A program made the position numbers and the translations under genes. Of a DNA stretch of 64,000 bases, positions 10,659 through 64,000 are shown one piece after another (position 1 is the first letter of the stretch; every line of letters starts with the position of its first letter). A model generated the notes under the pieces. That model was not told the origin of the DNA and ran no database searches. It saw only the letters and a list, made by a program, of their open reading frames with translations. Source of the DNA: Selaginella moellendorffii (taxonomy: Eukaryota > Plantae > Lycopodiophyta); NCBI RefSeq assembly GCF_000143415.4, contig NW_003314271.1, positions 1,842,806 to 1,906,805 on the forward strand. The letters are read 5' to 3'.

Positions 10659-12833
10659 ATGGAAGCGCCTCTCTCGAATACAAAGAACGCACAGGAGCTT
10701 CAAGGGACTTCTAGGGCTTCTCTCGCGGCGCTTCTTCGCAGGTATGGCGATGCCGGGAGCCTCTCGCGTGTCCGGCGGCTCCACTCACGCATCCGCGACG
10801 ACGTATTCCTCTGCAATCTCCTCGTCCAGGCGTATGGCAAGTGCCGATCAATCGACGACGCCCGGCGCTGCTTCGACGCCATCGCTGCCAAGAACGTCGT
10901 CTCGTGGACCCTGATGATCGCGGCGTATGGCCAGAATGGGGATTACAGGACAGCGCTGCGATTGTTTTGGGAGATGAATTTGCAGGGCGTGAGGCCGGAC
11001 AGGGTCGTGTTTGTGGAGATTTTGAGCGTTTGCGCCAAGACTGGGGATCTAGCCACGGGAATTTCGATCCATCTCCAGATTTTGGGATCGGGGATCTTGC
11101 ACTGCGACGTAGTCCTGCGCACAGCGATCGTCACCATGTATGGGAAGTGTGGAGATGTGGAAGCTGCCAAGGCCGCGTTTGACGAGATCGAGCAGCCGAA
11201 TAACTACTCGTGGAATTCTCTCATCGCAGCGTATGGCCAGAAGGGGCATTGCAAGGAAGCGTTGGAAACTTTCCAGCGGATGGATAGGCCGGATAAGTTT
11301 ACGTTCTTGAGCGTTCTTGGTGCTTGCTGCCATGCCGAAGAAGCTCAAGAAATCCACGCCCGGGTGGTCTCCTGCGGGCTAGAAATGGACGTGATGGTGG
11401 CGACTCAGCTCATCAGCGTTTATGGGAAGTGTGGAAGAGTTGCAGAGGCCCGTCGTGTGTTTGAGAAAGTTTGCTGGGAAGACGCTGTTGGCTGGAACTC
11501 CATGCTCGCTGCTTATGCCCAGAACGGGCTTCCAGATCAAGCGCTGGCTCTCTACTGGGCTCTGAATCAGGCTGGAGTTTCTCCCGATGAAGCGACCTTT
11601 GTGAGCCTTTTGGACGCCGCCGCTGCTTTGTGCGCGCTCAAGGTGGTGTTGGAGATCCATGCACAGGTTTCTTCGCGGAGGATTCAGTCTCACATCGTCG
11701 ACACGGCTCTCGTTTTTGCTTATGGAAAATGCGGCCGCCCAATGGATTCGAGAAAGGTGTTTGACAGCACCAACGGAGCAGTAGTGACACATTGGAATGC
11801 TATGATCGAGGCCTACTCACAAAACGACATGGAACGCGAAGCCATCCAACTTTTCAAGTATATGGACCTGAAAGGAATCAAGCAAGATGAAGTCAGCTTT
11901 ATAAACGTCATCGGTGCCTGTTCTACTCTCGAGGATCTAGCGGAAGGTGAAAGGCTGCACCAGAGGATTGTCGACATCTATCACAAACAAGATCGAGTAC
12001 TGGGAACCGCACTGATCAACCTTCACGGCAAGTGCGGGAACTTGGCTCAGGCTCGGTCGCTCCTAGACTCGATGCCATCCAAAGACGTTGTGTCCTGGAA
12101 CACGATGATAACGTCCTACGCCAGGTACGGCCACTCGAAAGCAGCACTTGAACTGTTCGAGACAATGGTGTCATCCACAACGTCGAGCTTGCGGCCGAGC
12201 TCGGTTACTTACGTTGCGGTGCTCGGTGCGTGCTCGGATTCGGGTGCCTTGACCGCTGGGAGGAGAATCCACGAACACATTCTAGCGAGCAAGGCAGAGT
12301 GGGAGCTTCCAGTCGGGAACGCTCTCATTAGCATGTACGGGAAGTGTGGAAGCGTGGAGGATGCAAGGCTGGTATTCACGGCGATGAGAGAAAAGAGCCT
12401 GTTCTCGTGGAACAGCATGCTGGCCGCGTACACCCAGAACCATCAAGGCAGCGCAGCGGAAGCGTTTGATCTCGGGAGGGAGATGGTCCTCCACGGCATC
12501 AAGCCCAACGAAGCGACTTTCGTCAGCATTCTCTACGCTTGCAGCCATGCAGGCCGGTTTGACGAAGCTTACGTCCAGTTCGTCGCCATGGAAAGCGACC
12601 ACGGTGTGAGGCCGGTTGCCGAGCACTATGGCTGCATGGTGGATCTGTTTGGGAGGCTGGGATGGCTGGCGGAGGCCGAGCATGCCGCCAAGAATGCGCC
12701 GAAGGGTGGCGATATCGTCTCGTGGATGAGTGTTTTGGGAGCTTGTAAGATCCATAGCGACGATGCTCGAGCCAAGCAAGTGGCAGAGAAAGTTTTCCAG
12801 GTTTCCAGAAGTAGTCTTTCTATAAACAACTAG
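10659..12833 (+). CDS. PLS-class PPR protein with truncated E domain and no DYW
   Basis: 724-aa intronless ORF with repeated MYGKCG / SWNxMIxAY; HYGCMVDLFGRLG...LGACKIH. Confidence 0.93.
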   Translation: MEAPLSNTKNAQELQGTSRASLAALLRRYGDAGSLSRVRRLHSRIRDDVFLCNLLVQAYGKCRSIDDARRCFDAIAAKNVVSWTLMIAAYGQNGDYRTALRLFWEMNLQGVRPDRVVFVEILSVCAKTGDLATGISIHLQILGSGILHCDVVLRTAIVTMYGKCGDVEAAKAAFDEIEQPNNYSWNSLIAAYGQKGHCKEALETFQRMDRPDKFTFLSVLGACCHAEEAQEIHARVVSCGLEMDVMVATQLISVYGKCGRVAEARRVFEKVCWEDAVGWNSMLAAYAQNGLPDQALALYWALNQAGVSPDEATFVSLLDAAAALCALKVVLEIHAQVSSRRIQSHIVDTALVFAYGKCGRPMDSRKVFDSTNGAVVTHWNAMIEAYSQNDMEREAIQLFKYMDLKGIKQDEVSFINVIGACSTLEDLAEGERLHQRIVDIYHKQDRVLGTALINLHGKCGNLAQARSLLDSMPSKDVVSWNTMITSYARYGHSKAALELFETMVSSTTSSLRPSSVTYVAVLGACSDSGALTAGRRIHEHILASKAEWELPVGNALISMYGKCGSVEDARLVFTAMREKSLFSWNSMLAAYTQNHQGSAAEAFDLGREMVLHGIKPNEATFVSILYACSHAGRFDEAYVQFVAMESDHGVRPVAEHYGCMVDLFGRLGWLAEAEHAAKNAPKGGDIVSWMSVLGACKIHSDDARAKQVAEKVFQVSRSSLSINN

Positions 12834-47898: not shown

Positions 47899-50448
47899 CT
47901 ACAAGTCGAAATTCAGCGAATGATAATTGTAGGTCGCGTTCTCAGCAGTTTTTCTATACTCCTGGCATAACGCTGCAACGCCTTCCTGCATGCTCATGGG
48001 GCCGCAAGCAAACACTCCCACATTCATGTTAATGGTGCTCTTGGCAAGACCAGCAAATACACCTGGTAACAAAGAAAATAGATTAGATAAAAGCATGACG
48101 AAAACTTACTCGCAAAATCTGGACGATGTCCATAGTGAACGCTGACAGGCTTGAGGCTTTCTTCCGGAGATCCCACATTGGTCATTGTTGTGGGCGATGG
48201 CGTCCATTGCCTCTTCCTCCTGACGGAGTTTGCAACGTACGCAATGGCTGCTCCAGCAATTATAACACCAAAGAGTGACTCGAGAAAAGCTAGGAGTGCT
48301 CCAAGAGATCGATCAAAGTCCTTGTCCTTGGAAGTATAGTGACTGTAAATCCAGAAGCGGCCAATGATCCCGGCCAGGAACATAAACCCGAAGAAGGACG
48401 CGAAGATGACGGCCGCTTCGACGACGCCACTCCCAGCCAAAGGTGGAGAAATTGCTCGCAGCTGCTGAGCAGCATACCTTGTCACGGACTTTGGAGATGG
48501 CTCGGCGTGGATCAGCACTGGGCCGCCTTTTCTTATGCTCGGAGCTTTGAGCAGCTGGATCTCTTTCGGGCCGGCGTTGTTTTGCTCCAAGTCTGCTGCT
48601 TGCTCGCGGGTGACATACGCTTGGACTTCGATGTTGAGAGCGTGCGCAAACTCTGGGCAGATCAGAGCTGGAGTGATCGAGTTGAGGATATGGAGCTCGT
48701 CCGACGTCTTGACTGTGTAGACGAGGATGATATCTTTGGGTGGCGTGAGAGACTTTGCTTGGATGCTGTAGAGGATATCTTTGAGCATGGACAAGAATGG
48801 AGAGATGCCACTTCCTCCAGCAATGAAAACTAGTACCTGGTATCTGGAAGGATCAAGGCCAGCTTTTTTGTCAAAGTACTAAAACCATGAGAACTATTAC
48901 CTTGATATGTAGTCCAAGTTGTGGCCATAAGGACCTTCTATTCCAGCCTCAAGTTGCAGCGATCCTCCATTATCTTGGATCATGCTAATGATCTTTGAGG
49001 TCCAGTCTCCATTCTTTTTTATCAGTAGTGTAAGACGGTCGGTCTCGACGTTGGAGCTGGAAATAACCGTGAAAGGATGCCAGTCGAGTTTGGAGATGGC
49101 TGGCAAGTTGAGAAAAACGAAGCTAGCTGCGCTGTAATGTAGCTCTGCTCAAAATCATGACAGATTTTCTAGTTGGAATTCACATGACGAAAAGTTTAAA
49201 ACTATGAACTTACCTGGTTCCTTTGCAAACACGAGCTCAATGGTCTCAGAGCTCAGCACTCTTACTCCCATGACATCAACCTTTTGTCGAGATTGCACAA
49301 ATCTCAAGAGTCGATTTACGGCGAATAACATGACGCCACCCAGAACCATAGCGTAGAATCGATCTCCAAGGTGCAAGCCAAAAAAGAGGATGAACAGTAT
49401 GTATAGATGATGGGTGTAATAGAAAAGCTCAAAATTTGCCTTGCGAACCCAGCCGATAGAAGTCGCCCACATTACTAGTCCAATTATCAACGCAATGAGT
49501 CCAGACAAGCCACTTATCTCGTCGCTGTGCCAGGCCCAGAGCTGCGAAGAACACTAGTGAAAAAAGCTCTTTTTTCCGGAACACATACCTCGTGGATCTT
49601 TTTCTCGATTATCCAGTAGATTATGTACAACAGCCCATGAACAGTCCAAGCCACCAGCATGGTGATTCCAATCCAAATGTGGTATTTGACTGCGTGCTCA
49701 AAAGGAATGTTGAGAAGTCGGAGAAGTGTAGAGCCTCTAGTCACTGGGAAGAACAGGATTGCCATGCAAAAGAGACCAGCTAGACCCGCTTCCACTGCTG
49801 CTATCTCTAGCTTCTTGTGCCACCTGAGGTAAGCAAACATTACATCTTTGAGGAGAACAAAGAACCGTGGTCATGGTTACTTACAAGGGCTCACGAAGCT
49901 TGGCTCGATTTATTGAGTTCACCGATCGTATGTAGTAAGCCGTGAAGGTGTAGACGGTAAAGAGCACCAAAGCGCATAAGAAAAGGAAGTCCGCCGCTGA
50001 AACAATCGAAAGTGGTCCCCTGATGAATAGTGGGTATGTTTCTGGATTGCTCCTGAAGGCTCGTAAGCTGCTGTTCCTGCTCAGAACAGGCAAAAGTTCC
50101 TAAGAATTTGGAGGGAGAATATCTCGCGGATACAACTCACTTGATCTTGAAGGCCTGCTTTCTCTTGTGGTGATAAGCCAGAGCCGTTGCGATCCCCGCG
50201 AAAATGATCGGAGCGCAATATACCACGATCTGCGGTCCTGCAAGGGTCGTTAATGGTACCCATAGAAACTTTAGAAGCTGCTTACCATTGTAATATGCTT
50301 TGGTCCTTGTTTGAGCCTGCGCGGGGGTCCAAAACTTCTGATACGCGTCCAATGGTCTCATAAACCACAAGAACGTCCACAAAACCAGGACGACTATCGC
50401 AGAGAACTTGAGCACTGCTTTTGTTCCACCGTGCCTCGCGCTCTCCAT
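47899..50448 (-). CDS. FRO: Ferric reduction oxidase, copy A
   Basis: FFPVTRGS; FEHAVKYHIW; FELFYYTHHLY; WHPFT (FAD); EGPYG; GGSGISPF; VGVFACGP; HSLNFDL*. Confidence 0.95.
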
Positions 50449-51015
50449 GGCTGCTAGATGTAATTCCAAACTAGCGAGCGAGCCTTAAAGCTACCTGATA
50501 GAAGCGGGATTATATACAAGCGAGGACGTTGCCTACTGTGTTGTTCTTGTCGCGCAGCGTTTTGACTTCGTAATATATAACTCAACTTTACCACAGCTTG
50601 CATTACATGTTCTGCATATCCCGCTAACAACTGGGTGGGAAAACTGCCTCCCGGGCCGCCTGGATTCCAGTGCTGACTTTTGGTTTAATCCAAATGAGCC
50701 TCGTAAGTCGCGAACGGATTGAGCGAGAACAACTAGCTTACAAGCGCGCATGTTTCTAGCGTGGCACCACGCGCGAGCCCGTGTGAGCAAACTTAAACGT
50801 AAACTTCTCTTTCGCTGGAAGGTCAGTACGCAATGCAAAGTCGTTTAAAACACAAAAACTAGAAAAAAAAAAAAAAGAATTATCATACTTAACGCTTCCA
50901 CTATCGGCCTCGATAAAGGCAAGGCTCAATAGACCGTTTTCTGTAACTTTGAGACACTGCAAAAGGGGTCTCAAAGATTCCCTGTAATGTAAGTGTAAAA
51001 AATATGGTACCTGTA

Positions 51016-53569
51016 TTACAGGTCGTAGTTTAATGGATGATAACTAAATCTCGGTGCCTGGCACTGCGAAGCCACCGTGCGTTGCATCTCTACAGGTCCA
51101 CACGCAAAAACTCCAACTTTGGATCCCTGCAGTCGCTTCGCATACGCATGGAACACATCTGATCAGCCAGAGTAAGTACTAGGAACGAGTAACTTTAGAC
51201 TCTAACCTGGAAGATGTGGACGACTCCCATAGTGGACCTGCGAAGGATGAGTCGGTTGGCTAGATATTGTTGAAAGCATCCTCTCGGGCTTCTTGTTCAC
51301 GCCTTTGTCGCTTCTTGCCAGCCGATTCCAAAGGGCCAGAGTTCCTCCACCAAAGACAACGACGCCAATCACGGTTGCTATGTATCCAAAAAGACCACCC
51401 AGCGAGCGAGAAAACACGTCCGAGGTGTTGTGGTCGACCGGATACACGACGAATCTCTCGAGGATGCCAATGACGAACAGGAAGCCTGCCGAAGATGCCA
51501 ACACCAGCGCTGCGTGGAGCATCCCATTTTGGATCCCCTCGGACCCAGATATGCTCCTCGGTTGAGACTTTCGGGTGCTGAAAATGATGGTGCTTGCTGT
51601 CGTCTGAGGCTTCTCCAACTCGGGGCCATCCTCTCGGGTGACATAAACTTGGACGTCGATCTTCAACCGGCTAGCAAAGTCTGGTGTTATGAGCTGTAGG
51701 ACAGAGAGGTCGTCGGACTTTTTCACGGCCCAGAGAAGAATGATCTCCTCAGGTGCCAAAACTTTCTGGTTTTCAATATCATAGAGGAGCTCCTTTATAA
51801 TGGAAATAAATGGTGAAATTCCACTGCCCCCGGCGACAAAAATCAGAACGTCATAGCTGAAAAAAGTTGAGTCAGATTTATGCTTCCCAACTGAAAGCCT
51901 TACCGAGCGACGTAGCTCATGTCGTGGCCGTATGGCCCTTCAACAGCAGCCTCTACTATATGCGATGTGTCGGCGTTCTTTAAGTACTCCTTGAGTGTCA
52001 GCGTCCAGCCTCCGTAACACTTTATCAAAAGCGAAAGATGCTCCGTGTCTACTTTGGACGAAGATACGATGGTAAAGGGATGCCATTGCAGTGGAGACAC
52101 GACAGGGAAGTTCACCATAATGAAACTTGCCGGATTATATGCGAGACCTGACATAAAAATGCGTTCGTAAAAGATGGTCCAGAGAGAACAAACAAGCAGA
52201 AAGCTACTTACTCGGATGCTTTGCAATAGTAAGTTCCATCGTTTCCGAAGACATCATTCGAGCTGATAAGACGTCTACGATTCTGCGTGACTGTATGAAC
52301 CTCAGAAACCGATTCAGCAGAAACAGCAAGATGCCACCCACAACCGCACAGAATAACCTGTCTCCAACGTGTAATGCAAAGGTCAAAATGAATACAATAT
52401 AGAGCTGATGTGTGTAGTAGAAAAGCTCAAATTTCTTCTTTCGAACTGGGCCAAGAGATGTCATCCACATAATCACGCCGATAATGTATACAAACAATCC
52501 AGAAAGGCCGCTTATTTCTGTTTTCTTCCACTGAACAAGCTGAGAGTTTGACGAGAATGTAAGAACGAAGATTAAAGCAAACTGCTTACCTCTGTCATCT
52601 TGCCAGTGACAGCCCAGAAGATCACAAAAACCAGTCCGTGGACTGTCCAAATCACCATCATAATGTGTCCAATCCATTTGTGATACTTAATCGCGTGCTC
52701 AAAGGGTACATTTAACAAACGAAGAAACACCGAGCCTCGAGCAACTGGAAAGAACAAGAATGCAAGGCAGACAATGCCGACGAGTCCCAAATTCGTTCCA
52801 ACCATCTCCAATTTTCTTTCCCATCTGAAAAGGAAACACGTTATGTATGAAGCACTCAAAACAGAATAACTCCTCACAGTTTTAACTGGTGCTTGTGCAG
52901 ATAAGCAGGAGTGATTTTAGCAAACTTTGTGCTCAAGTACTCCGATAGTGTCCACACGAGAAGAGCCACGAAGAGAACGAGGCATGTAAGCTCCGCCGCA
53001 GAGGCAACTGCAAGTGGTCCTCGAACTACAGCAGGGAAAGAAAATGGATTTACTCGCACTCCATCCCTCCTGGATTAAAACTTTAGTTTAAGCGTGAATT
53101 CAAAAAGAGGATCTACCTCCTAGTGCTGTCGTCTTTGGAAAGCTGAAGATAAATCGCACCAACCACAGCCAAGATGACGACGGGAGCCGAATAAAAAAGT
53201 GTGAAGGACCCTGCCAGGACCTGTGTCAGCCGACTCTTGTGACCTCACAAGCAAGATATATTCGTTCTTGTTCTACCAGCAGCAATGCAAAGAGAATGAA
53301 AGAGCACCAGGACTTCTATACTCAATAATTGCAAGCATGAGAGTTTCCTCGGCTAGAACCTCAAGACGAGCCACAATGCGATCGATCACACACAAGAAGC
53401 ACTCAACATGTTTACCTGCGACTCCATAAGCTTTCGTTGTGGTATCCTTCGTGAACGACTGCCAGAACTTGGAGTAGGCGGAGGTTGGTCGCATCACCCA
53501 CATCAAAATCCATCCTCCGAACAGCAGCAGCATCAGCAGCCGCCACACGACCCTCGAGAGAGCAGCCAT
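51016..53569 (-). CDS. FRO: Ferric reduction oxidase, copy B
   Basis: FFPVARGS; FEHAIKYHKW; FELFYYTHQLY; QWHPFT; EGPYG; AGGSGISPF; VGVFACGP; HPLNYDL*. Confidence 0.95.
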
Positions 53570-54306
53570 GCCACCGATGAATTGGGAGGAACGGATGAAT
53601 CCCTTCAAAAAGTACACTGCAAAACAAGGAAGGGGAAAAGCAAACGAGTGAGGGAGGAGAGCGAGCAGTAATCTGAGAACTCACGGCGCGAGTGTGTTGC
53701 CTAGCGACGAGCATCATGCCACTGTAGAAAACATTGCACACGGATCCAAGTATATAAACAAAACCAGAGATCATAACCGTGCGCTGCTTTCCATGGTTTT
53801 GATTGGCGATTTTAGTGTGTACCATATAAGGACCACCACCACCATCGGTACCATCGATATGATTGAAAAGAATGAGCAAACATTGCGTCCGTCAACGTTA
53901 GCCAGCCGAATCGAAAAAACCATCTCCGGACCCGGGCCCATGCACCAACAACAAAAACACCGTGCCTTACGTGTGCTATGCTGCGCTAAGCGTGTGCTTG
54001 AGCCGTGATTTGCATGCATGCACTCACAGACTAAGCAGTCAAGCGCCAGTCAGGCAATAGAAACAAAAAGAAAGGCGACAAGACCAGAGATGCATGCTTA
54101 AGTTCCAAGGAAGTAACAGCAACAGCAACAACATCACAATACCAGTCGTTTTCTCTCGAGTGTGTTGTGGTAGGCTGGCAGCAAACGCACTGAGTAGAGC
54201 TTGGACCGCCACTATCGGAGGTCCGCACCTGGATGATGTGGTGTTACTCACAAATCAAGTGGAAGCGCACCACTAACCAGAATAAATGTGGCCATCGTTT
54301 TCGTTG

Positions 54307-57033
54307 TCAAATTAAAAGATCTAGTGATGTGAACTGGACGGCCTGGCGGAGAATCCTTGCTCTGTTCGCATACGACACGTCGGTGCTGCGTAGATCCAAC
54401 GTAAATCTCTTGTGCTCTGATGCAAGCAGCGCGTTCCCTCGACACGAAGCAGCGTGAAGGACCTGCAGTCGGGCGTAAGAGACAGAATTGTAAAGCGTTT
54501 GCGTAGGACCTCTGGAAGATTTTCTTCACCGTATGAGTAGTTGCCCATCAACGAGAACTGAAACACGACAGCGTGACGTCAAGATGTTGCGCGATATCAA
54601 ACACATATACCCGTTGTAAAGAAGAGTGGTTTTGCATAACCGCGCAGAGCACTCTGGAACACGAGTCCTGGACGTTGTTGTTAGCAAAAGACAACTCCAG
54701 CAAAGACGTGTTTTCCTGAAAATCGGTATGCATTTCTTTTGCAGAGCATCAGACACGCCACAAACCTGAAGCCACAAAAGAATTGCACAAGCCCCTGCCG
54801 CAGTGATCTTGTTGTCGCTTAAATCAAGTGCCTGCAGTTATCACAAAAGCGCTTAGAGCGATGTTGTTCAAACTTTTACCTGAATATGAGCATGTTTTCT
54901 CAGTCCCTCTGCCAAGAAAAATGCATGTTCGTCTAAGAGACAGCACTGCTGCAACCGCAGAGTCTTCAACTGTGTCGGTACAGCATCAAGTATTGGTTTC
55001 GCTACTCTGTATAAACGTAGATAAGAACCAAGACATAGAAGGAAGATCTACTTAACAAGCGCTCTTCTTGAATAGCATCCGTGTTACAGTTTCCTGTAGA
55101 TGTACGAAAAAGAAACTTCGACCAATGTTCAAAAATCAATACCGTTAAAAAGAAGCTCCTTCAGTCGACTGTACTTTAAAGCTGCAAGTGCTTCCTCAGG
55201 TATGAATTTTCCAATACCATTTTCCCGTACATCCAATACTTTCAGAGATCTACAGTAAAATGCAAGTTTTTTCCAAAAGAAAAATCACAGTATACTGCGT
55301 ACCTTGCAAACTCAAGGGCCCGAGCGATAGCTGTGAATCCTTCTGTCAGGATGCAGTTGTAAGCGAGGCGAAGTACCTGGAGCCTTACAACGTGAAAAAA
55401 TAAGAAAACGAGCTGTTTCACATAGAGAATAGCTACCTGCTATGTTTCCGAAGAGAAAGGCTCAAATTTACTGCCGCTTCCTTTGTAAAGCCTGTCTCAC
55501 TATGCATTGAGAAACTTTTAGCAAAAGGCTATAAAGGTGACAAGCTACCTGATATCTAGCAGTTGGAGAAGCTGCATTTCTGCTAATATTTTGCCAACAT
55601 AAAGACCATTATCTCCTAGCTGAACCTTTGCAAGGCCTGCAACAGTTACTGTAAATACCCGCTCGGAACGTAACGCTATGCTCACAAAGGGAGAATAGAG
55701 CTGGAAATTGAGCCATATATACGTCGAACGACAAGCTGCCCTCTCCTGTCATTATCCACTCCCAGAATGCGGACCGTATCTGACAACGAGCAAAACAGTA
55801 TTGCACTTTGATAAACCCAAACTTACTGTATGCGTGTACACCCACTTTCCCTTGTGCGATACTTCAGCAATGAAGCTATCGTTTGTGCCTAGAACTTCTT
55901 TTCAAGAAAAGCCACAAAGAAAAAATTTCATGCGTACCTCCGTCCTGTCGATCAGCTAACTGTTGGAGATAAATTGACATATATAGTGATTTCCATGAAG
56001 TTGGAGGTGGCCTGTCTGAGGTGATCCATTCGTCGTACGCTGGATAGTGCTCCAACGAACAAATTGACATTGTTGCATCGTCATGCATCATTTTCTTGCA
56101 GTTTTCCTCCCAAAGACTTCTCGTATCTGTTAAATGCCGAATTAATTAGCAAGCAAGAAGCGTTTCCTTTGTAGGCATACCAAGACCCAGAGATAAAAAA
56201 TCATCCCTTTCTTCAGCGTAAAATAAGTCTTGCGCGGAAAACTGCTCCGCAACACACCATGCTAAGTCTGGTGGCATTGACGAGACATCCGGTACATCTG
56301 TCCAAGTGCCACGAATTGATCAAACAGGAAAATCCTCCTAGCACAGACCTTTTAGATTGTGAGCAATCATCGCCGCAGCAACCTTTAGAAGATTTTTTAT
56401 GCCAAAAAAATGAGCAGCATGAACAATTTCCATCACTTGGCTTGGTTCTACCTTTTAAAAAAGAAATGAATGATAAAAGCGAAGAACTGAGCTTACTTTA
56501 CCTCGAACTGAAACGTTACTCGCGGGGCGTTTTGTCCCCAATATTTCTCTGCCTTAAGACTGTCAATGTACTCTATAAAAACGAACCGCATTACAGCTTC
56601 CAACACCTTGAAGTTGATCAGAAAAATCTCGCTATGAGAGAGAGAAAAAAAAAGAACTACCTCGTAGCGAAAATCTGGGAATCGGATCACATTCTCCAAT
56701 CTTTCTCTAAACTGCACTGGAAAGAAAGACACAAAACCACCAATGAGAACGAAAATCCAAAGAGAAAAGTGACGAACCTTCTCCGCGAAGAATAACATCG
56801 ACGCATTTTAGCTGCTCCACTATCTTCCTAGGAACAAAGAACTCCACCTCCTCCTGGCAGACGATCCGGAGGTAGCCATTCCCGTCCGCCGGAGTGATCT
56901 CGAGCGAGATCGGGGCTGGAACCGTCGGCTTCCCCTCGAAAATCTCAATGCTGTCCGCTGCCGGCGCCAGCGCCTTCCTGTGCTTACGCTTCCAAGGCTT
57001 TGGCGACAATGCGCGCACATCCCTGGCCGCCAT
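54307..57033 (-). CDS. Multi-exon Elongin C-like + Elongin A-like + RNI-type LRR protein
   Basis: About 18 hand-spliced GT-AG exons. LRRs: LQLLDIS, LQVLRLAYNCI, LKVLDVRENGI, LKTLRLQQCCL, ALDLSDNKI, LLELSFANNNV. N-terminal domains are described in findings. Confidence 0.75.
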
Positions 57034-57218
57034 AGCTGTGCAGATGCTAGAACTCGATACAAAACCCACTGCGTCGCTCGACAAAGCCCTAAATTATAGA
57101 GAACTACATGAGTCCCTACCGCTAATGCAACGTCACCTTTTATACAAACCATATCTATTCACATAAATACGATATATTCTTCCTTTCCAGTCTACTAAAT
57201 CTTCTTAGCTCGCGAACT

Positions 57219-59062
57219 TCAAGAATCTACGATGTTCTTCATGCCGCGCTTTGATCGCAGTAGCTCCTGGCGCCGCGCGCTCGTCAGCTTCACGAAATCG
57301 GCCTCGGATTTGCGGTGGGACTTGCCTTTGATCGGCGTCTTGAACTGCTCTCGGTGCTTCTGCTGGATGCGAGCAGCCTTGCTCGAGATCACTCCTCCTC
57401 TTGGAGCTTCCGGAGCTGGATCATCGTCACTCGGGCTATCGTGATCGTCTCCACTGCTCTTGTGACCCACCTCGAATCTCCGCTGCTCCAGGCACTCTGC
57501 TCGCTTCTTCCTGGCTCTCTCCAGCACCTTCTCCATGGTTGATCTCTTGTGAAGGAACACCGGGCCCTTCTTGTACTGGTTCCGCGACTTTGATCGCTCC
57601 ATTGCTCTTCTCAGCATCGCTTTGAGGTGCTCGGATCCAAGTTCCTCGTCGGTGGCTTGCGTGAGTTCCTCGATCATCTGGACAGCGCTCTCCTCTGGAA
57701 GATCAAGCGTTGGAGCGGGAGTATCCGTTTGAACTTCGAGTTCCTGGACAATCATAGCTACGGCTTGGTTCTCGGAGGCCTCAAGAGTTTGATCAACTCT
57801 GCCTTCCACAATGAAGCCTTTCGACTCGCTGAGCTCGGAGGTAATTACTGCGTCTGGAGTTGGAAGTGAGAGTTCCTTGATATCAGTAGCTGCTGGAGAT
57901 AGATCATCTTCACTTTTCCCCAGTGCTGCTTCTTCAGCTGCGAATTTGGGCACTGATTCGTAGACATGGTGCTTCTTTTTCGCTTCTTGTCGAGCGACAC
58001 CCACTGCTTCGTCGAGAAGGGCCTTCGTTTCAATGACAACTCCTTGTTTGGCAACAGCCACCACTGCTGCGTCGGAAAGGACCTTCGTTTCACTGACAAC
58101 TTCCTGTTTAGCGACAGCCGTCACTGCTTCGACGAGGACCTTCTCTTTGGTGACAACTGCGATCTGATTCTGATCACGAGAAACCTCCACAGCTGGAACT
58201 TTCTCGTCCTGTTGCTCGTGAGAAGCCTTAATCACAGCAGGCAAAGTTTGTCGTGCCTCCACTACTTCCGAGACTTCGCCACCTTTCTCGGTTGTCTTAA
58301 TCTCCACTCGAGCAGCGGACGGAGTTTCTTGCGCCCCCATTTCTAACGCTTTGCCACCCTGTGCTTGATCGTGAGAAGCCTCTGCCAAGGCAGCAAACGT
58401 TGGAACCTCGACATCTTTCTCATCTTGTCGATCCACCTCCGCGACTGCTTTCTCAGGATGATCTTCGTCGTCTAGCTCAATTGCTTCCGGCGATCTCTCT
58501 AGCTTTGCGCATCTGTCACACAAACACAAACACACGCATTCAGGCTCTTTGCAAACTTGAGAAAACTTACCTTCCATCACCATGATCCAAGTTCTCTCGA
58601 GCATCCATCGACGTCTTCACCTTGTCCGGTTCCTCGGCAACGCTGTGCGCGTCGTCAAACTCACCCTTGTCATCACTCGCAGTACAAAAGCTATGCTTGT
58701 CATGCTCGCCATCGTCACGCTTCTCATCGTCGCGGCTTTTCACCGGCGAGATCGCATTTTCCTCCGTGGTACACTGGCTCGACTGAGAATCACCCACAGC
58801 GCTTCCAGTTCTCCCAGCGGCTGGAGGAGCCACATCCTTGTCCTTGCCACTCTCGCGGCTCGCTGGAGCCTGCCCAGATCAAAGCAAAACTCGATCGATC
58901 TGGATCCAAAGTATGAGGTGGGCTTACCTTGAAGAGCGCCGCGAGCGCGTCCGCCATGAAGAGATTGGTCTTGTTGGCCGGAATTCCATTCTTCTTGCAC
59001 AGCTGCTGCAAGCGCCGCCTAGGGAGCTTGTGGTAATCCAGGGCCGCCTTGTCGCGTGCCAT
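57219..59062 (-). CDS. Unknown protein with N-terminal SAP/HeH-like motif, acidic middle and basic C-terminus (3 exons)
   Basis: LDYHKLPRRRLQQLCKKNGIPANKTNLFMADALAAL; introns at about 58928-58872 and 58570-58514. Confidence 0.8.
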
Positions 59063-59597
59063 CGCCGCTCGGGATTTCTAGGGCTCGCGCTCCTCCATCT
59101 CCTTTTAACCAGCTGGGAAATGAGCCGTTGTGGCATATTCTGGCAGCCACTGTCTGAAATTCCGAGCGATCTCTTGTACGAATGGACTGGAAGATCATCC
59201 CGTACAGCTCCAGTGATCTAGCTCCTGGAAACTTTCTTTTTCCATGCGTACCAGGAAATGACGTCAGGCTCACATATGGAAGACATAGATCACGTACCAA
59301 AGTTTTATTTTCTTGTCAGCTTCTTCCTTGCAGCCATTGGTAGTTAGAACTATAAGCTTGGAAGTGCAGAATCGTAAAAACGACCTGTACAAAACTCATG
59401 GTTATAGTTGTATCAAAGATTTATATGTGAGGCACCTTCTCATACTGCAGGGATGGCTCAAAGATGGAATCCAGCGCTGGCAAAACTGAGGGATAAAGTT
59501 CTCCTGGATCATCTGTACAAAGAAGATATCATAATGTTGTCTAGAACACGAAGAAGTGAAGAAGAAGAAAAACGTACCGGAGTTCGTCTCGTGATCT

Positions 59598-62363
59598 TCA
59601 AACCGAGTTTAACTCGGAGGAAGAATAGATGTTGGACATCATCACGTAGGCGGAGGCATTCCCTCGATCCAGCTCCAGCACCGACTCAAAGGCAAGCTTC
59701 CCCACTTCCAAGTTCCTCCACTTGTAGCAAGCACTTAACAGTGCCATCCAGCTCTCGGCGCTCGCATCCACCGGCATTTCTTTCAAGAGCTCGGCTGCTT
59801 CGTCCAGCCGGTTTGCTCGTCCCAGGAGGTCCACCATGCAAGCGTAGTGCTCGGCCCCCCGCGGAAGTCCGCGCTTCCTCCACATCTCTTCGAAGACTTC
59901 CTTTCCTCTCTCCACGAGACCTTTGTGGCTGCAAGCCGTGAGAACCGAGAGATAAGTCACTCCGTCCGGCTGTAGATCCTTCTCCTGGAGCTTCATCTTC
60001 TCGAAAAGCTCGAAAACCCGATCAGTGTCTCCCTGGCAGCTATATCCCGAGATGAGAGCACTCCATGTCACCATGGTCTTCCTGGAGATCTTCCGGAAAA
60101 CTTCCTCGGCTTCTGCCATGCTTCCACACTTCCCGTAAAAATCCACCAGCGAGTTTGCCACCATTGTGTCCGTCTCCAATCCAGCACTGCAAATCTCGGC
60201 ATGGAATCGTCTACCTCTTTCCAGCGCTCCCAGAGCAGCGCACGCCTTGAGAGCTGCGACATAAGTCACCGAGTTGAGCTCGCGGCTGCCTCGTTCTTCT
60301 CTCATGCGTTCCACAGTCTCGAGCGCGGCCTCACTTTCACCGTTCCCCAGGAATCCCAAAACGATGCAGTTCCAGGAGACCACGTCGGGTTGCCGAATCC
60401 TTTCGAAGACGTGAAGAGCATCCACCGTGCTCTGGCTCTTCGCGTAAGAATCCAGCAGCGTATTTGCCAGCATGGTGTCAAGTTCCACGTCGAAAAACCT
60501 CACTGCTCGAGCGTGGATGTCTTTGAGAAACTGTAAGCTGTGAGAATGCTCCTTCTCGGCAAAGCAAGCACAGGCTTTGAGCGCTGCGAGGAGAGTGACA
60601 CGATCCGGTGAAGGGCCTCGGCCTTGGATCATTTGCGAATAAAGCTCGAGTGCCTTCTGGGCTTCACCACTTTCAGTGTATCCCAGCACCATGCAGTTCC
60701 ACAGAGCAACGTCGTCTCGCAGATCATTTCTCAAGCTTTCGAAAATCTTTCGAGCTTCCGCAGTAAATCCACATTTAGCGTAGAGGTCGACCAGGCTTGT
60801 GGCGACAGGTAATTCCAGAGCCTTCGCTTGTTTAGCCGCTGTAGCATGAATTTCCCTGCCTCTCTTCACTGTGTTGATCTTCCCGTACCTCCCTTCGACG
60901 AGCTTGCCATCTTCTTTGCTCGCGAGACTGGACAGAGATTTAAGAATAGCAACCAACACAGCCGTGCTCGGTTCGCCACCTTCGTCTTGCATGAATTGAT
61001 AGAGCTCGAGAGCTGATTCTTCGTCTCCATTCTGTGCATGAGATGAGATGATAGCAGTCCAAGCCATCCTTCTATGCTGGCGAGAGCTTTGAAAGACCAG
61101 CACAGAATCCGCTAATCTCCCACATCTTCCATAAAAGTCCACCAGGCTCGTCTCGAAAACCATCTCCATCTCGTCTCGGTACCTCACAGCGTGTGAGTGG
61201 ATAACTCTGCCTCTTTGCAGTGCCTCTCGCTTGCCTTGTTCGTTGGAAGCCATGGAAACGCATGCCTTGAGAGCACCAAGAAGTGTCAGGCAGTCCGGTA
61301 AGCAGCTTTCGTCGCGCATTCGCGAATAAAGCGTCAAGGCCACCTCGGCTTGTCCACTCTGTGCGTATCCCAAGATGATAGAGTTCCACAAAACGACGTC
61401 CCGGTGCTGGACATTTTCGAAAACTCGACGAGCATCAACCATGCTGCCGCATTTCGACAACATATCCACCAAAGTTGTCGCCACAACGATGTCCTTGGAC
61501 AGATCCAAGCTCCTGGCTTTCTGAAACTCGCAGAAGATAGCCCTCCCTTTCTCCAGGAACTTGTAGCTCCCAGCAAGAGATTCCTTCTCGGCAGCGCTCG
61601 CGCAAGACTTAAGAGCAGCAAGAAGCGTGACGCGATCCGGTTCGTGTCCCTCGGCCTTCATCCGCGAGAAAAACTCCAGTGCCGAATCGGCGTCACCACT
61701 TTGAGCGTAGCCGAGTATCAGCCCCGTCCACAAGACAACACTAAGTTCCTGGAGGCTCTCGAAAATTCTTGCAGCATCCACCATCCGTCCACACTTTGCG
61801 TACATATCCACCAGGCTGCTCGCAGCAAAAGTGTCCAACTCCACACCGATTCGAGCAGCCCGAGCATGAACTTCCTTTCCTTTTCTCAAACTCTCGACCT
61901 TCTCTGCTCGGTCTCCACTAACTTCGTTCTCGGCTATGGCAGAGCAAGCCTTGAGCGCGGCAAGAACCGTGACACGGTCAGGTGGGCAACCGTGTTCCTC
62001 CATCCTCGAGTAAAAATCCAAAGCTTGATCGCCATAGCCATGCTTGGCGAGGCCGAGAATGATGCTAGTCCAAGAAATTACGTCCTTCTCTTCCATCCTG
62101 TCAAAGAGCTCGCGAGCTTCTGATATACAGCCACATTTCACGTACATGTCGAGGAGGCTGTTGGCGACAACGAGGTTGGAGACATCTCCGCTGTGAATCA
62201 CATCGCCGTGGATCTTCTTCCCTGTTACCAAATCCCTGGAGAGCTTGCACGCCTTGAGAGCAAAGATAATGGCTGCTAAGCTCGGCCTACAACCCCGTTC
62301 TTGGAGCTCGAAATATTTCCTCACTGGAATGGTTGCATCAGTGTTTGTGGGAGCGCGTACCAT
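59598..62363 (-). CDS. PLS-class PPR protein with E domain and no DYW (921 aa)
   Basis: Repeated SLVDMYAKCG / WxxxILGYAQ; HYACMVDLLGRA...AYVMMSNIY. Confidence 0.95.
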   Translation of the reverse strand: MVRAPTNTDATIPVRKYFELQERGCRPSLAAIIFALKACKLSRDLVTGKKIHGDVIHSGDVSNLVVANSLLDMYVKCGCISEARELFDRMEEKDVISWTSIILGLAKHGYGDQALDFYSRMEEHGCPPDRVTVLAALKACSAIAENEVSGDRAEKVESLRKGKEVHARAARIGVELDTFAASSLVDMYAKCGRMVDAARIFESLQELSVVLWTGLILGYAQSGDADSALEFFSRMKAEGHEPDRVTLLAALKSCASAAEKESLAGSYKFLEKGRAIFCEFQKARSLDLSKDIVVATTLVDMLSKCGSMVDARRVFENVQHRDVVLWNSIILGYAQSGQAEVALTLYSRMRDESCLPDCLTLLGALKACVSMASNEQGKREALQRGRVIHSHAVRYRDEMEMVFETSLVDFYGRCGRLADSVLVFQSSRQHRRMAWTAIISSHAQNGDEESALELYQFMQDEGGEPSTAVLVAILKSLSSLASKEDGKLVEGRYGKINTVKRGREIHATAAKQAKALELPVATSLVDLYAKCGFTAEARKIFESLRNDLRDDVALWNCMVLGYTESGEAQKALELYSQMIQGRGPSPDRVTLLAALKACACFAEKEHSHSLQFLKDIHARAVRFFDVELDTMLANTLLDSYAKSQSTVDALHVFERIRQPDVVSWNCIVLGFLGNGESEAALETVERMREERGSRELNSVTYVAALKACAALGALERGRRFHAEICSAGLETDTMVANSLVDFYGKCGSMAEAEEVFRKISRKTMVTWSALISGYSCQGDTDRVFELFEKMKLQEKDLQPDGVTYLSVLTACSHKGLVERGKEVFEEMWRKRGLPRGAEHYACMVDLLGRANRLDEAAELLKEMPVDASAESWMALLSACYKWRNLEVGKLAFESVLELDRGNASAYVMMSNIYSSSELNSV

Positions 62364-62516
62364 GGGACGCCCTACATTGTGCCCAAGAGCCCTAAGTTTC
62401 CTGCTTTATTTTGTAAACAATTAAGCGAATTATACTTACACAATGACTCTACAAGAATATGAATTTCGTATAATGTGTGAATGTTTATAGAAATATATAT
62501 TTTATTTTTTTAAGAG

Positions 62517-63482
62517 TTAAAATATAGACCATAATTTTTTACCATTATTTGCATTGTAAATTATAACATTACCTTCATTTCTTACAAGTAATACTGTATC
62601 TAATATACATGGCTCTTTTAAGCAATATCTTGTTGCCCAAACTATATTATTATTACTTTTAATAATAAAGTTTCCATTTTCTTGTAAAACTGCAACACAA
62701 TTATAATTAATGGCATTTATTCCAAAATTTCCCATACTTTTCCACATAATATTGTTGGTAGAAACTTTGTGAAATTTAAGTTTACAATTATCTTTTAAAG
62801 TAAATCTAAACAAACCATTTGGTGATACTAAACTGTTATTTTCTTCTATATATGATCCAATCTCATTTTGAAATCCACTTATTAATGAAGATCTATAAAG
62901 TGCTTCACAATTCCAATTTGAAATATATATTTCCGAATTTAAAATTTTGATATTTAAATTGGTGTTACCTTTACCTGTTGATCTTAATTTGTATTTTAAT
63001 GAGAAATTTAAATAAGCCACATGTATGTAACCATAAAATGAGTTTGGGCTTGATAATGCTTGATATTCTAAATTATCTAAAATATATGTAAAAACTTTTA
63101 ACAAAACATCATCTCGATATTTTTCAAGTTCAGTTGGATCCAATAAACAAAATGAAAAAGATGGGAGAACCTTATCTCTTACAATTTCAATTGGTTTCAA
63201 TATGGTTAATTTAATACTAATACCTGCATTTTGTAAAATGAATGCTGGAATTTTAATTTCTCCTACAGAAAAAGTTTCACCATTTTAAAAATAATCTTTA
63301 ATATAATCAAAGATATAGTTTATTAAATTATAAAAATCTTCAATATTTAATTTATTTGGACTTTCAGCACTTATAACAGCTGGATAAAGTGGCTGATCAT
63401 TATCATTTCCTATATTAAAGGAGACATAGTAACATAAAATTATAAAAATCAAAATTTTGATTCTAGAAAGCAATAAATTCAT
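62517..63482 (-). pseudogene. Secreted bulb-type (B-) lectin protein gene with one in-frame stop
   Basis: ORFs 63285-63482 and 62517-63200 are in the same frame, separated by a TAA at 63285-63287; signal-like N-terminus; LVSPNGLF...W.S...LQENGNF...VWAT...RNEGNVIIY...LWS. Confidence 0.75.
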
Positions 63483-64000
63483 AATATAGATTAATATTGC
63501 AAGTATTTATAAAATTGGAATATTTTTTTAATGTGATTTAAATATATTTATCACTTATCTATATAAAGAAACTAGAAATTGCATTGGTGGTGAATACCTA
63601 TGATTTTTTTTGAGTATTATTTTAATCATTTTATTCTAAATTTAACCCTGTTTTTAACTGATTTAAAGGGTTTTAATATTCTAGTTTGTTACCAAGTGGC
63701 ATTGCACAAATAAAACATCTTATTTTAATGATCAGAGAAAAATTTAAAATTGAGTTAGATTTTAATGCATGAAAGACTAGATCCAAAGTTTGCGTATACT
63801 CCAAAATTCACCAATATGCAGACAAGAAGGTGCTTCTTGATCAAGAGGATGAAATGAGACAATGGTCTGCCTAATTCCCACTGTGAGGCTGCTGCTGCCA
63901 AATATCTACTACAGCAATCTCATCCAGCAAGTGATCTAAACTCCCATCATAACTACTATTAATGATTTTTATTGACAATTCCCAAGTTTTGCATAACAGC

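Follow-up and report, generated by a model that had tools for sequence, protein, structure and literature searches.

A BTB domain, an F-box/Elongin A-like box and leucine-rich repeats on one chain in Selaginella moellendorffii: a candidate cullin-RING substrate receptor

The gene and its transcripts

The gene LOC9650312 of Selaginella moellendorffii lies on the minus strand of a window of 64,000 nucleotides (nt) taken from contig NW_003314271.1. It encodes a protein of 619 residues in which a BTB core, closest in sequence to Elongin C, is followed on the same chain by a box that resembles the F-box and Elongin A, and by a solenoid of leucine-rich repeats (LRRs). The spliced translation is identical, letter for letter, to RefSeq XP_024528872.1, "uncharacterized protein LOC9650312 isoform X1". 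An older model at the same locus, SELMODRAFT_440378 (P0024), carries the automatic UniProt name "BTB domain-containing protein". The gene is annotated but uncharacterized. A second locus on another scaffold, LOC9645850, differs from LOC9650312 at two residues and is probably the other haplotype.

The coding region consists of 18 exons of 37-256 nt each and 17 GT..AG introns of 47-61 nt (Table 1). Its limits had been given exactly by a sequence-only reading of this DNA, which described the locus as a fusion of Elongin C, the BC-box region of Elongin A and LRRs; all peptide strings quoted there are present in the translation. The transcript evidence comes from spliced contigs of four public sequencing runs, from four studies, over 54150-57150. 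Fifteen splice joints are listed in these contigs, 11 of them in all four runs, and the remaining two of the 17 introns agree with the ends of contig pieces. Ambiguous cuts were moved to GT..AG, and the two unlisted introns were added from the piece ends. Every joint reads CT..AC on the plus strand and skips 47-61 nt, which corresponds to GT..AG introns of a minus-strand gene. The run type (RNA) was only guessed, but RNA is the sole possible source of intron-free contigs. Contigs X1 record 2 and X2 record 4 span exon 1 to exon 14, while contig X3 record 5 spans exon 3 to the 3' end; the overlap places the Elongin C-like exons and the LRR exons on one transcript. The exon joins predicted from the sequence are thus carried by spliced contigs from four studies, and the alternative of separate transcripts for the two ends of the gene falls away.

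In run X1, the contigs keep the small introns 54716-54765, 55007-55056 and 55094-55142, which are spliced out in the other runs. Partly spliced transcripts of LOC9650312 are therefore present. Downstream of an intron in the 3' untranslated region (UTR), contigs of runs X1 and X2 extend for a further ~2.7 kb. Either the UTR is long, or the assembly has fused this transcript with a neighboring, possibly convergent, one.

Domain architecture of the protein

Single exons yielded nothing useful in Pfam, the pieces being too short, and ESM Atlas feature searches with pieces gave either no match or just weak BTB/BACK leads at 0.79. Exon 6 (62 residues), compared exhaustively with 1.84 billion representatives by phmmer, gave six matches: two plant proteins of full-length size, two fragments and two repeat proteins. 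The last two (P0001 and P0004) are tandem-repeat proteins, matched just via a repeated P-P-P-S-W-Y-S-T-L-like unit, and were taken as spurious. The fern protein P0006, when used as query, retrieved the ortholog family, with XP_024528872.1 (P0012) among its members. Because full-length orthologs at 46-52% identity occur in at least eight other species, the gene is real far beyond chance.

The identity of the first domain follows from a search of all PDB sequences with a profile built from eight orthologs. All 20 matches at E ≤ 10 are Elongin C (E 2e-4 to 0.04), the best covering chain residues 3-101 of 103, and no Skp1 or other BTB chain is found at that threshold. A single fern sequence likewise retrieves Elongin C at E 0.01. 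An AlphaFold2 (AF2) model was made of the N-terminal module from 11 sequences, with a mean predicted local distance difference test score (pLDDT) of 68.9 and a predicted template modeling score (pTM) of 0.62; for a second model, of the full-length protein, the pLDDT is 75.7, and the pTM of the two models is 0.62-0.63. The top 12 Foldseek matches of the N-terminal model are all Elongin C chains (template modeling score by target 0.64-0.80). In VIA-align, the model superposes on Elongin C of 1VCB with Z 10.1 and a root-mean-square deviation (rmsd) of 1.8 Å over 87 of 88 residues. The Elongin C-like nature of the first block, which the sequence-only reading had proposed, is thereby upheld by profile search and structure comparison alike.

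The model also aligns with the BTB domains of Skp1, SPOP, BTBD6, BCL6, NPR1 and KLHL proteins (Z 9-11.8, model residues ~24-150), and the predicted fold contains all elements of a complete BTB domain, B1-B3 and A1-A5. All eight orthologs match Pfam BTB (PF00651) at E ≤ 1, the best at 0.0013, and the domain of the fern ortholog by itself scores 21.2 bits (cut-off 20.5). Skp1_POZ (PF03931) is matched by one of the eight, under its cut-off (E 0.038). No structure is predicted by AF2 before the strand of residues 54-58, the pLDDT being below 50 for residues 1-48, and the N-terminal dimerization strand and helix of long-form BTB domains are not present in the model. In this respect the modeled core resembles the monomeric short-form type of Skp1 and Elongin C. 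The disordered tail includes an invariant basic motif, K-P-W-K-x-K, that could serve as nuclear-localization or docking motif.

A shorter RefSeq product, isoform X2 (539 residues, P0022; window 56493-56798, minus strand), begins at an ATG inside intron 1 (M-L-F-F-A-E-K). Since it does not contain the first 87 residues, it would be devoid of the first two BTB strands and of the conserved basic motif.

Elongin C (ELOC/Elc1) is an adaptor of CUL2 and CUL5, and of CUL3 in yeast. It shares the core fold and is the closest relative in sequence, with an identity of only ~20%. The loop-and-helix pattern before the last helix also matches (F-P-I-A-P-E in Elongin C, F-E-V-E-P-S here). Elongin C is, however, a stand-alone subunit of ~100 residues that is paired with Elongin B, whereas here the domain is part of a multi-domain chain and the helix that follows is provided in cis. 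Behind the third BTB strand (P0012 residues 95-100, exon 2), an F-P is invariant and a D nearly so, at the same position as the P-x-P-N motif by which Skp1 contacts CUL1 (PMC1257465). This may hint at the face that meets a cullin.

The helix next to this core was interpreted in the sequence-only reading as a BC box fused behind Elongin C. Its sequence L-L-K-V-A-A-A-M-I, with M-P-P-D-L 21 residues further on, fits the BC-box spacing L-x3-(C/A)-x3-(V/I/L), and the position of the BC-box Cys is taken by Ala in Selaginella. L160, L161, A164, M167, A169 and L172 are invariant in this region. Both AF2 models contain a helix of residues 158-170 directly after helix 142-155. It starts two residues past the last Elongin C-like helix, and the junction lies within exon 4, without a linker. 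In VIA-align, the BTB domains of BTBD6, BCL6, ZBTB8A and KLHL26 and Skp1 align through this helix, to model residue ~150 (protein residue ~172). Elongin C itself does not possess the BTB helix A5 and binds the BC-box helix of another chain (PMC1257465). In the AF2 models, by contrast, the fold does not end after helix 4 with a groove left free for a BC box in trans, and the putative BC-box helix corresponds to A5 of the complete BTB fold. The spacing and the co-linear order of the earlier proposal thus stand, but the helix is modeled as an integral BTB element. A true Elongin C fused to a trans-type BC box was rejected as the sole reading, in view of the linker-free junction inside exon 4 and the A5 position. 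The two descriptions would be compatible if the BC box acts as an A5 helix given in trans. Because the helix sits as A5 in the model, the protein can equally be read as BTB, 3-box and LRR.

The segment behind this helix aligns, at sub-threshold scores, with two families. Pfam Elongin_A (PF06881) matches six of the eight orthologs co-linearly over profile positions 1-84 of 105 (E 0.0025-0.041), with a best score of 18.7 bits in Ginkgo against a cut-off of 29.8. When the box segment of Ginkgo was compared to the PDB with phmmer (E ≤ 10), only five chains were found, namely three FBXW7 F-boxes (E 0.22-0.25) and two Elongin A chains (E 0.34-0.5). These alignments pair L-P-x-(E/D)-L-A and L-W-x3-C and are convincing by eye. 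The C-terminal region of Elongin A shows the same co-linear order: a helix with BC-box spacing, ~20 residues, (V/M)-P followed by a helix, and L-W-x3-C. In contrast to Elongin A and F-box proteins, the segment shares one covalent chain with the domain presumed to be its partner, and the TFIIS-like N-terminal domain of Elongin A is not found by Pfam in the full protein at E ≤ 1. Membership of the Elongin A family was rejected on account of this absence and of the scores below the Pfam cut-off. The Elongin A likeness claimed for the second block is therefore retained as co-linearity with the BC-box/F-box-like region of Elongin A and with the F-box of FBXW7, always under the Pfam thresholds.

The box region was folded as part of the N-terminal model, and its position points to a further family. 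The alignment with the BTB/3-box of SPOP extends to model residue 180 (Z 10.5, rmsd 3.1, 127 residues), that with BTB plus 3-box of KEAP1 to residue 186, so that both run through the first two box helices. ASK1 reaches residue 211 (Z 11.8), and KLHL3 reaches residue 234 in this moderate-confidence model. Taken together, the box is consistent with an element that is F-box/Elongin A-like in sequence and 3-box-like in its modeled position, every profile score being sub-threshold. DUF4660 (PF15559) also matches the box in five of nine members (four of the eight aligned orthologs and Calypogeia): residues 198-269 of the Ginkgo ortholog P0011 score 27.2 bits against a cut-off of 27, and P0007, P0013, P0014 and P0018 score lower. 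This match may be due to chance or to a distant relative of the box, and is kept as a lead.

Between the box and the LRR cap, the columns P252-L260 and Q267-Q273 are invariant, and AF2 predicts helices at 257-272 and 278-289. The remainder of the protein matches Pfam LRR_6 (PF13516) at 39.2-44.3 bits (cut-off 23.4). AF2 places 11-12 beta-strand/helix repeats of 27-29 residues here, with a regular pattern and a pLDDT of mostly 85-94 in the full-length model, which exceeds the "at least 6" repeats counted from the sequence. The PDB matches comprise ribonuclease inhibitor (RI; E 4e-13), NOD2, NLRPs and the axonemal proteins DRC5 and LRRC34. This part is a generic RI-type solenoid, and no function was read from its structural matches.

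Table 1. Features of LOC9650312 (positions of the window)
Feature	Position	Strand	Details	Evidence
Coding region	54307..57033	minus	18 exons, 619 residues; Selaginella moellendorffii LOC9650312 isoform X1; ATG at 57033, stop codon ends at 54307	gene model, spliced contigs of four runs, exact protein identity
5' UTR	57034..57087	minus	limit reached by contigs	contig ends 57069-57087 in four runs
Invariant basic motif	56983..57000	minus	K-P-W-K-x-K, residues 12-17, in otherwise disordered tail	alignment columns K12 P13 W14 K15 K17; pLDDT <50
Elongin C-like BTB core	56401..56877	minus	residues 53-156, exons 1-4; three strands and helices, invariant loop Y-W-G..P-R..F-Q-F-E-V.P	PDB profile search, Foldseek, VIA-align
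Helix with BC-box spacing, BTB A5 position	56353..56400	minus	residues 157-172, same exon as preceding helix; L-x3-A-x3-I	sequence, AF2, VIA-align
Putative F-box/Elongin A-like box	56080..56292	minus	residues 176-228, exons 5-6; (L/M)-P-x-D-L-A-W-C... then L-W-x3-C	Pfam sub-threshold, PDB phmmer, VIA-align
Invariant P-P-x-T-S-W-K-S-L and two linker helices	55845..56010	minus	residues 252-290, ahead of LRR cap	invariant columns, AF2 helices
RI-type LRRs, ~11	54310..55844	minus	residues 291-619, exons 7-18	Pfam LRR_6, AF2, PDB matches
3' UTR intron	54229..54277	minus	49 nt, GT..AG (GT at 54277, AG end 54229), begins 29 nt past stop	contig pieces end 54276/54278; depth returns in 54150-54250 bin

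An open reading frame (ORF) of 461 residues (57219-58604, minus strand) lies on the same strand and ends 186 nt upstream of the LOC9650312 ATG; the contigs of LOC9650312 begin ~130 nt past its stop. It has no Pfam match and contains internal V-A-K-Q-x-V-V-x-E-T-K-like repeats. Two intronless genes for pentatricopeptide-repeat (PPR) proteins of the PLS class are found at 59598-62363 (minus strand, 921 residues, with E motif) and at 10659-12833 (plus strand, 724 residues); both are of a kind that is typical for Selaginella, with its large PPR family, and they fit a lycophyte genome. Within the profiled stretch, the G+C content drops sharply from 42-55% (50000-62500) to 23-29% (62500-64000).

Conservation and distribution of the family

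Three word-indexed searches, with the full-length fern query, the family profile and the N-terminal module alone, gave the same small set of orthologs. It comprises the liverwort Calypogeia, the mosses Physcomitrium and Ceratodon, Selaginella, the ferns Psilotum, Pteridium and two Adiantum species, two fern-like transcripts, and Ginkgo. In the search with the N-terminal module, all 960 candidates were scored and the 12 proteins that passed all belong to this set. The next-best matches (NLRC3, NLRP3-like proteins and RanGAP) have the LRRs alone in common. The gene tree agrees with the species tree, and the gene is present in single copy. In Adiantum nelumboides, the ortholog is divided between two neighboring gene models (P0005 and P0016, on one 855-kb contig), the first of which runs into zinc-knuckle (gag-like) sequence. 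This points to an inserted retroelement or to a chimeric annotation.

Conservation is highest at the N-terminal side. From liverwort to Ginkgo, the mean column identity is 73-75% in the N-terminal module versus 60% over the whole protein; the A3/A4 loop, the A5 helix, the box and the P-P-x-T-S-W-K-S-L motif stand out by long invariant stretches.

No angiosperm ortholog was found in the three word-indexed searches. The NCBI and UniRef sources searched presumably cover angiosperm proteomes well, and the lack of the gene in angiosperms is for that reason probably real. Conifers, cycads, Marchantia, hornworts and algae gave no match either, but for these groups absence cannot be taken as established, given that the index works on shared 5-residue words, that the exhaustive query had 62 residues, and that sampling is uncertain. 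The sequence-only reading did not recognize the architecture from seed plants. This holds for the angiosperms searched but not for Ginkgo.

All taxa in which an ortholog was found have flagellated sperm, Ginkgo included, in line with a restriction that had been guessed beforehand. The pattern suggests a link to spermatogenesis, as a lead drawn from the taxa found. The family is absent from the supplements of a spermatogenesis screen (10.1101/2021.07.25.453666). Literature searches on plant BTB-LRR proteins, on the gene identifiers and on links between antheridia and BTB proteins found nothing.

Candidate roles of the protein

We lean, if only slightly, towards reading the protein as a one-chain substrate receptor of a cullin-RING ligase, because the order of BTB fold, helical box and repeat domain is the design of BTB-type CUL3 receptors. 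CUL3 would be the likeliest partner, since it takes BTB proteins in plants and is used by Elongin C and Elongin A in yeast. In the proposed mechanism, residues 53-172 would form a short-form (Skp1/Elongin C-type) BTB domain, closest in sequence to Elongin C, that carries its own closing A5 helix with BC-box spacing. Residues 176-290 would add the F-box/Elongin A-like helices, placed in the model like the 3-box of CUL3 adaptors, and residues 291-619 would form a curved solenoid of ~11 RI-type LRRs. The BTB-plus-box module would dock on the N-terminal domain of the cullin, while the LRR surface would hold the substrate.

BTB-type CUL3 receptors have been described as single-chain analogs of the Skp1/F-box and Elongin C/SOCS-box pairs (PMC1257465, PMC4668279), with the 3-box as functional analog of F-box and SOCS box (PMC4668279). 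The parts named in the proposal of a self-contained adaptor and receptor do lie on one chain; the principle behind it is already an accepted design. SPOP, KEAP1/KLHL and the plant BPM/NPH3 proteins likewise combine a BTB domain, a helical box and a substrate-binding repeat domain. They differ from the present family in several respects. Here the BTB domain is of the short form, without dimerization elements and closer to Elongin C, the box is F-box/Elongin A-like, and the candidate substrate domain is an RI-type LRR instead of MATH, kelch or NPH3. Such an LRR substrate domain was not found described among plant BTB families. The same three elements occur in the same order in SKP1 with FBXL F-box-LRR proteins and in Elongin BC with LRR1 or LRRC41, where the adaptor is a separate polypeptide. 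FBXL repeats are usually of a shorter, cysteine-containing type, whereas the repeats here are of the RI type with 27-29 residues. The only architecture of BTB plus LRR found in the literature is that of the 43 BTB proteins with leucine-rich repeats from the Parachlamydia-related endosymbiont UWE25 (PMC1257465). These are bacterial, no F-box/Elongin A-like box has been reported for them, and the likeness noted is one of architecture. The combination of an Elongin C-closest short BTB domain, an F-box/Elongin A-like box and RI-type LRRs, in a few plant lineages, is new; no published description was found in the literature searches, which speaks against the objection that the protein might belong to an already described family of this build.

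Several points weigh against the receptor reading. The Selaginella protein itself remains under the Pfam cut-offs, with 13-16 bits for BTB and 15.9 bits for Elongin_A, and the same holds for its F-box scores. F-box-like (PF12937) matches three of the eight orthologs, with a best score of 14.2 bits against a cut-off of 24.3, and F-box (PF00646) reaches 12.7 bits at best against 20.5. The AF2 models, built from 9-11 sequences, are of moderate confidence (pLDDT 69 and 76), and packing in cis was read solely from the ranges of the structural alignments. In addition, BTB domains also serve outside ligases, and the RI-type LRRs that most resemble these are found in axonemal structural proteins too, DRC5 and LRRC34 among them.

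These last two points lead to the rival that survives best, even though we hold it to be distinctly less probable than a cullin receptor. It describes a non-degradative scaffold in which the LRR solenoid and the BTB domain act as protein-protein adaptors in a sperm, cilium-related or cytoskeletal assembly, without any cullin. Many BTB proteins are not ligase adaptors (PMC1257465), the orthologs come from plant lineages with flagellated sperm only, and the closest solved LRR relatives include proteins of the axonemal 96-nm repeat (DRC5/TCTE1, LRRC34, radial spoke protein 15 and trypanosome LRRPs). RI-type LRRs are generic, however, with RI, NOD2 and NLRPs scoring about equally, and the strongest constraint falls on the BTB-plus-box module, the cullin-binding part in related proteins. 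A link to antheridial expression was not found either, and Marchantia is not among the matches.

It is quite improbable that we are dealing with an ordinary F-box-LRR protein, bound to SKP1 in trans as a CUL1 receptor of the SCF type, with the BTB domain as an extra module, for instance for a second partner or for regulation. An F-box followed by LRRs is a classic architecture, and both the FBXW7 F-box (E 0.22) and Pfam F-box-like (E 0.04) can be aligned with the stretch (L/M)-P-x-D-L-A-W-C...L-W-x3-C. Yet all F-box scores are below their cut-offs and are exceeded by those of Elongin_A, and in the model the first F-box-like helices pack by the protein's own BTB helices A4/A5, in the 3-box position, where they would fill the SKP1-facing side. 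We consider it highly improbable that the protein stands for the Elongin complex in fused form (Elongin C joined to the C-terminal region of Elongin A), acting in the nucleus on RNA polymerase II or chromatin as elongation factor or stalled-polymerase ligase: the best sequence matches are indeed Elongin C and Elongin A, and the invariant K-P-W-K-x-K-(R/K)-K motif near the N terminus could be a nuclear-localization signal, but a TFIIS-like N-terminal domain is missing in Pfam, Elongin A has nothing that corresponds to the LRR domain, and the Elongin A similarity is weak and limited to the box.

A more speculative proposal, which we consider rather unlikely, concerns the origin of the family. 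It might be a preserved intermediate between two-chain systems (Elongin C with a BC-box protein, Skp1 with an F-box protein) and the one-chain BTB-3-box receptors, in which an Elongin C-type domain would have obtained its missing A5 helix from a covalently attached BC-box/F-box-LRR receptor. Such a protein would date from the ancestor of land plants, would have had a role in the formation or operation of flagellated sperm, and would have disappeared together with these sperm in conifers and angiosperms.

Should neither a cullin nor a sperm function apply, LOC9650312 would be one more lineage-restricted BTB protein. If the N-terminal module does bind a cullin, as we infer from its architecture, the family would represent a new class of plant cullin-RING substrate receptor with an LRR substrate domain. 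It would also be a case in which the kinship of BC box/SOCS box, F-box and 3-box, usually treated as just functionally analogous, can still be seen in the sequence. Its distribution makes the gene a candidate for the small motile-sperm gene set of land plants, a link open to a direct test, since Physcomitrium, in which genes are routinely knocked out, has one copy of the gene, LOC112279808.

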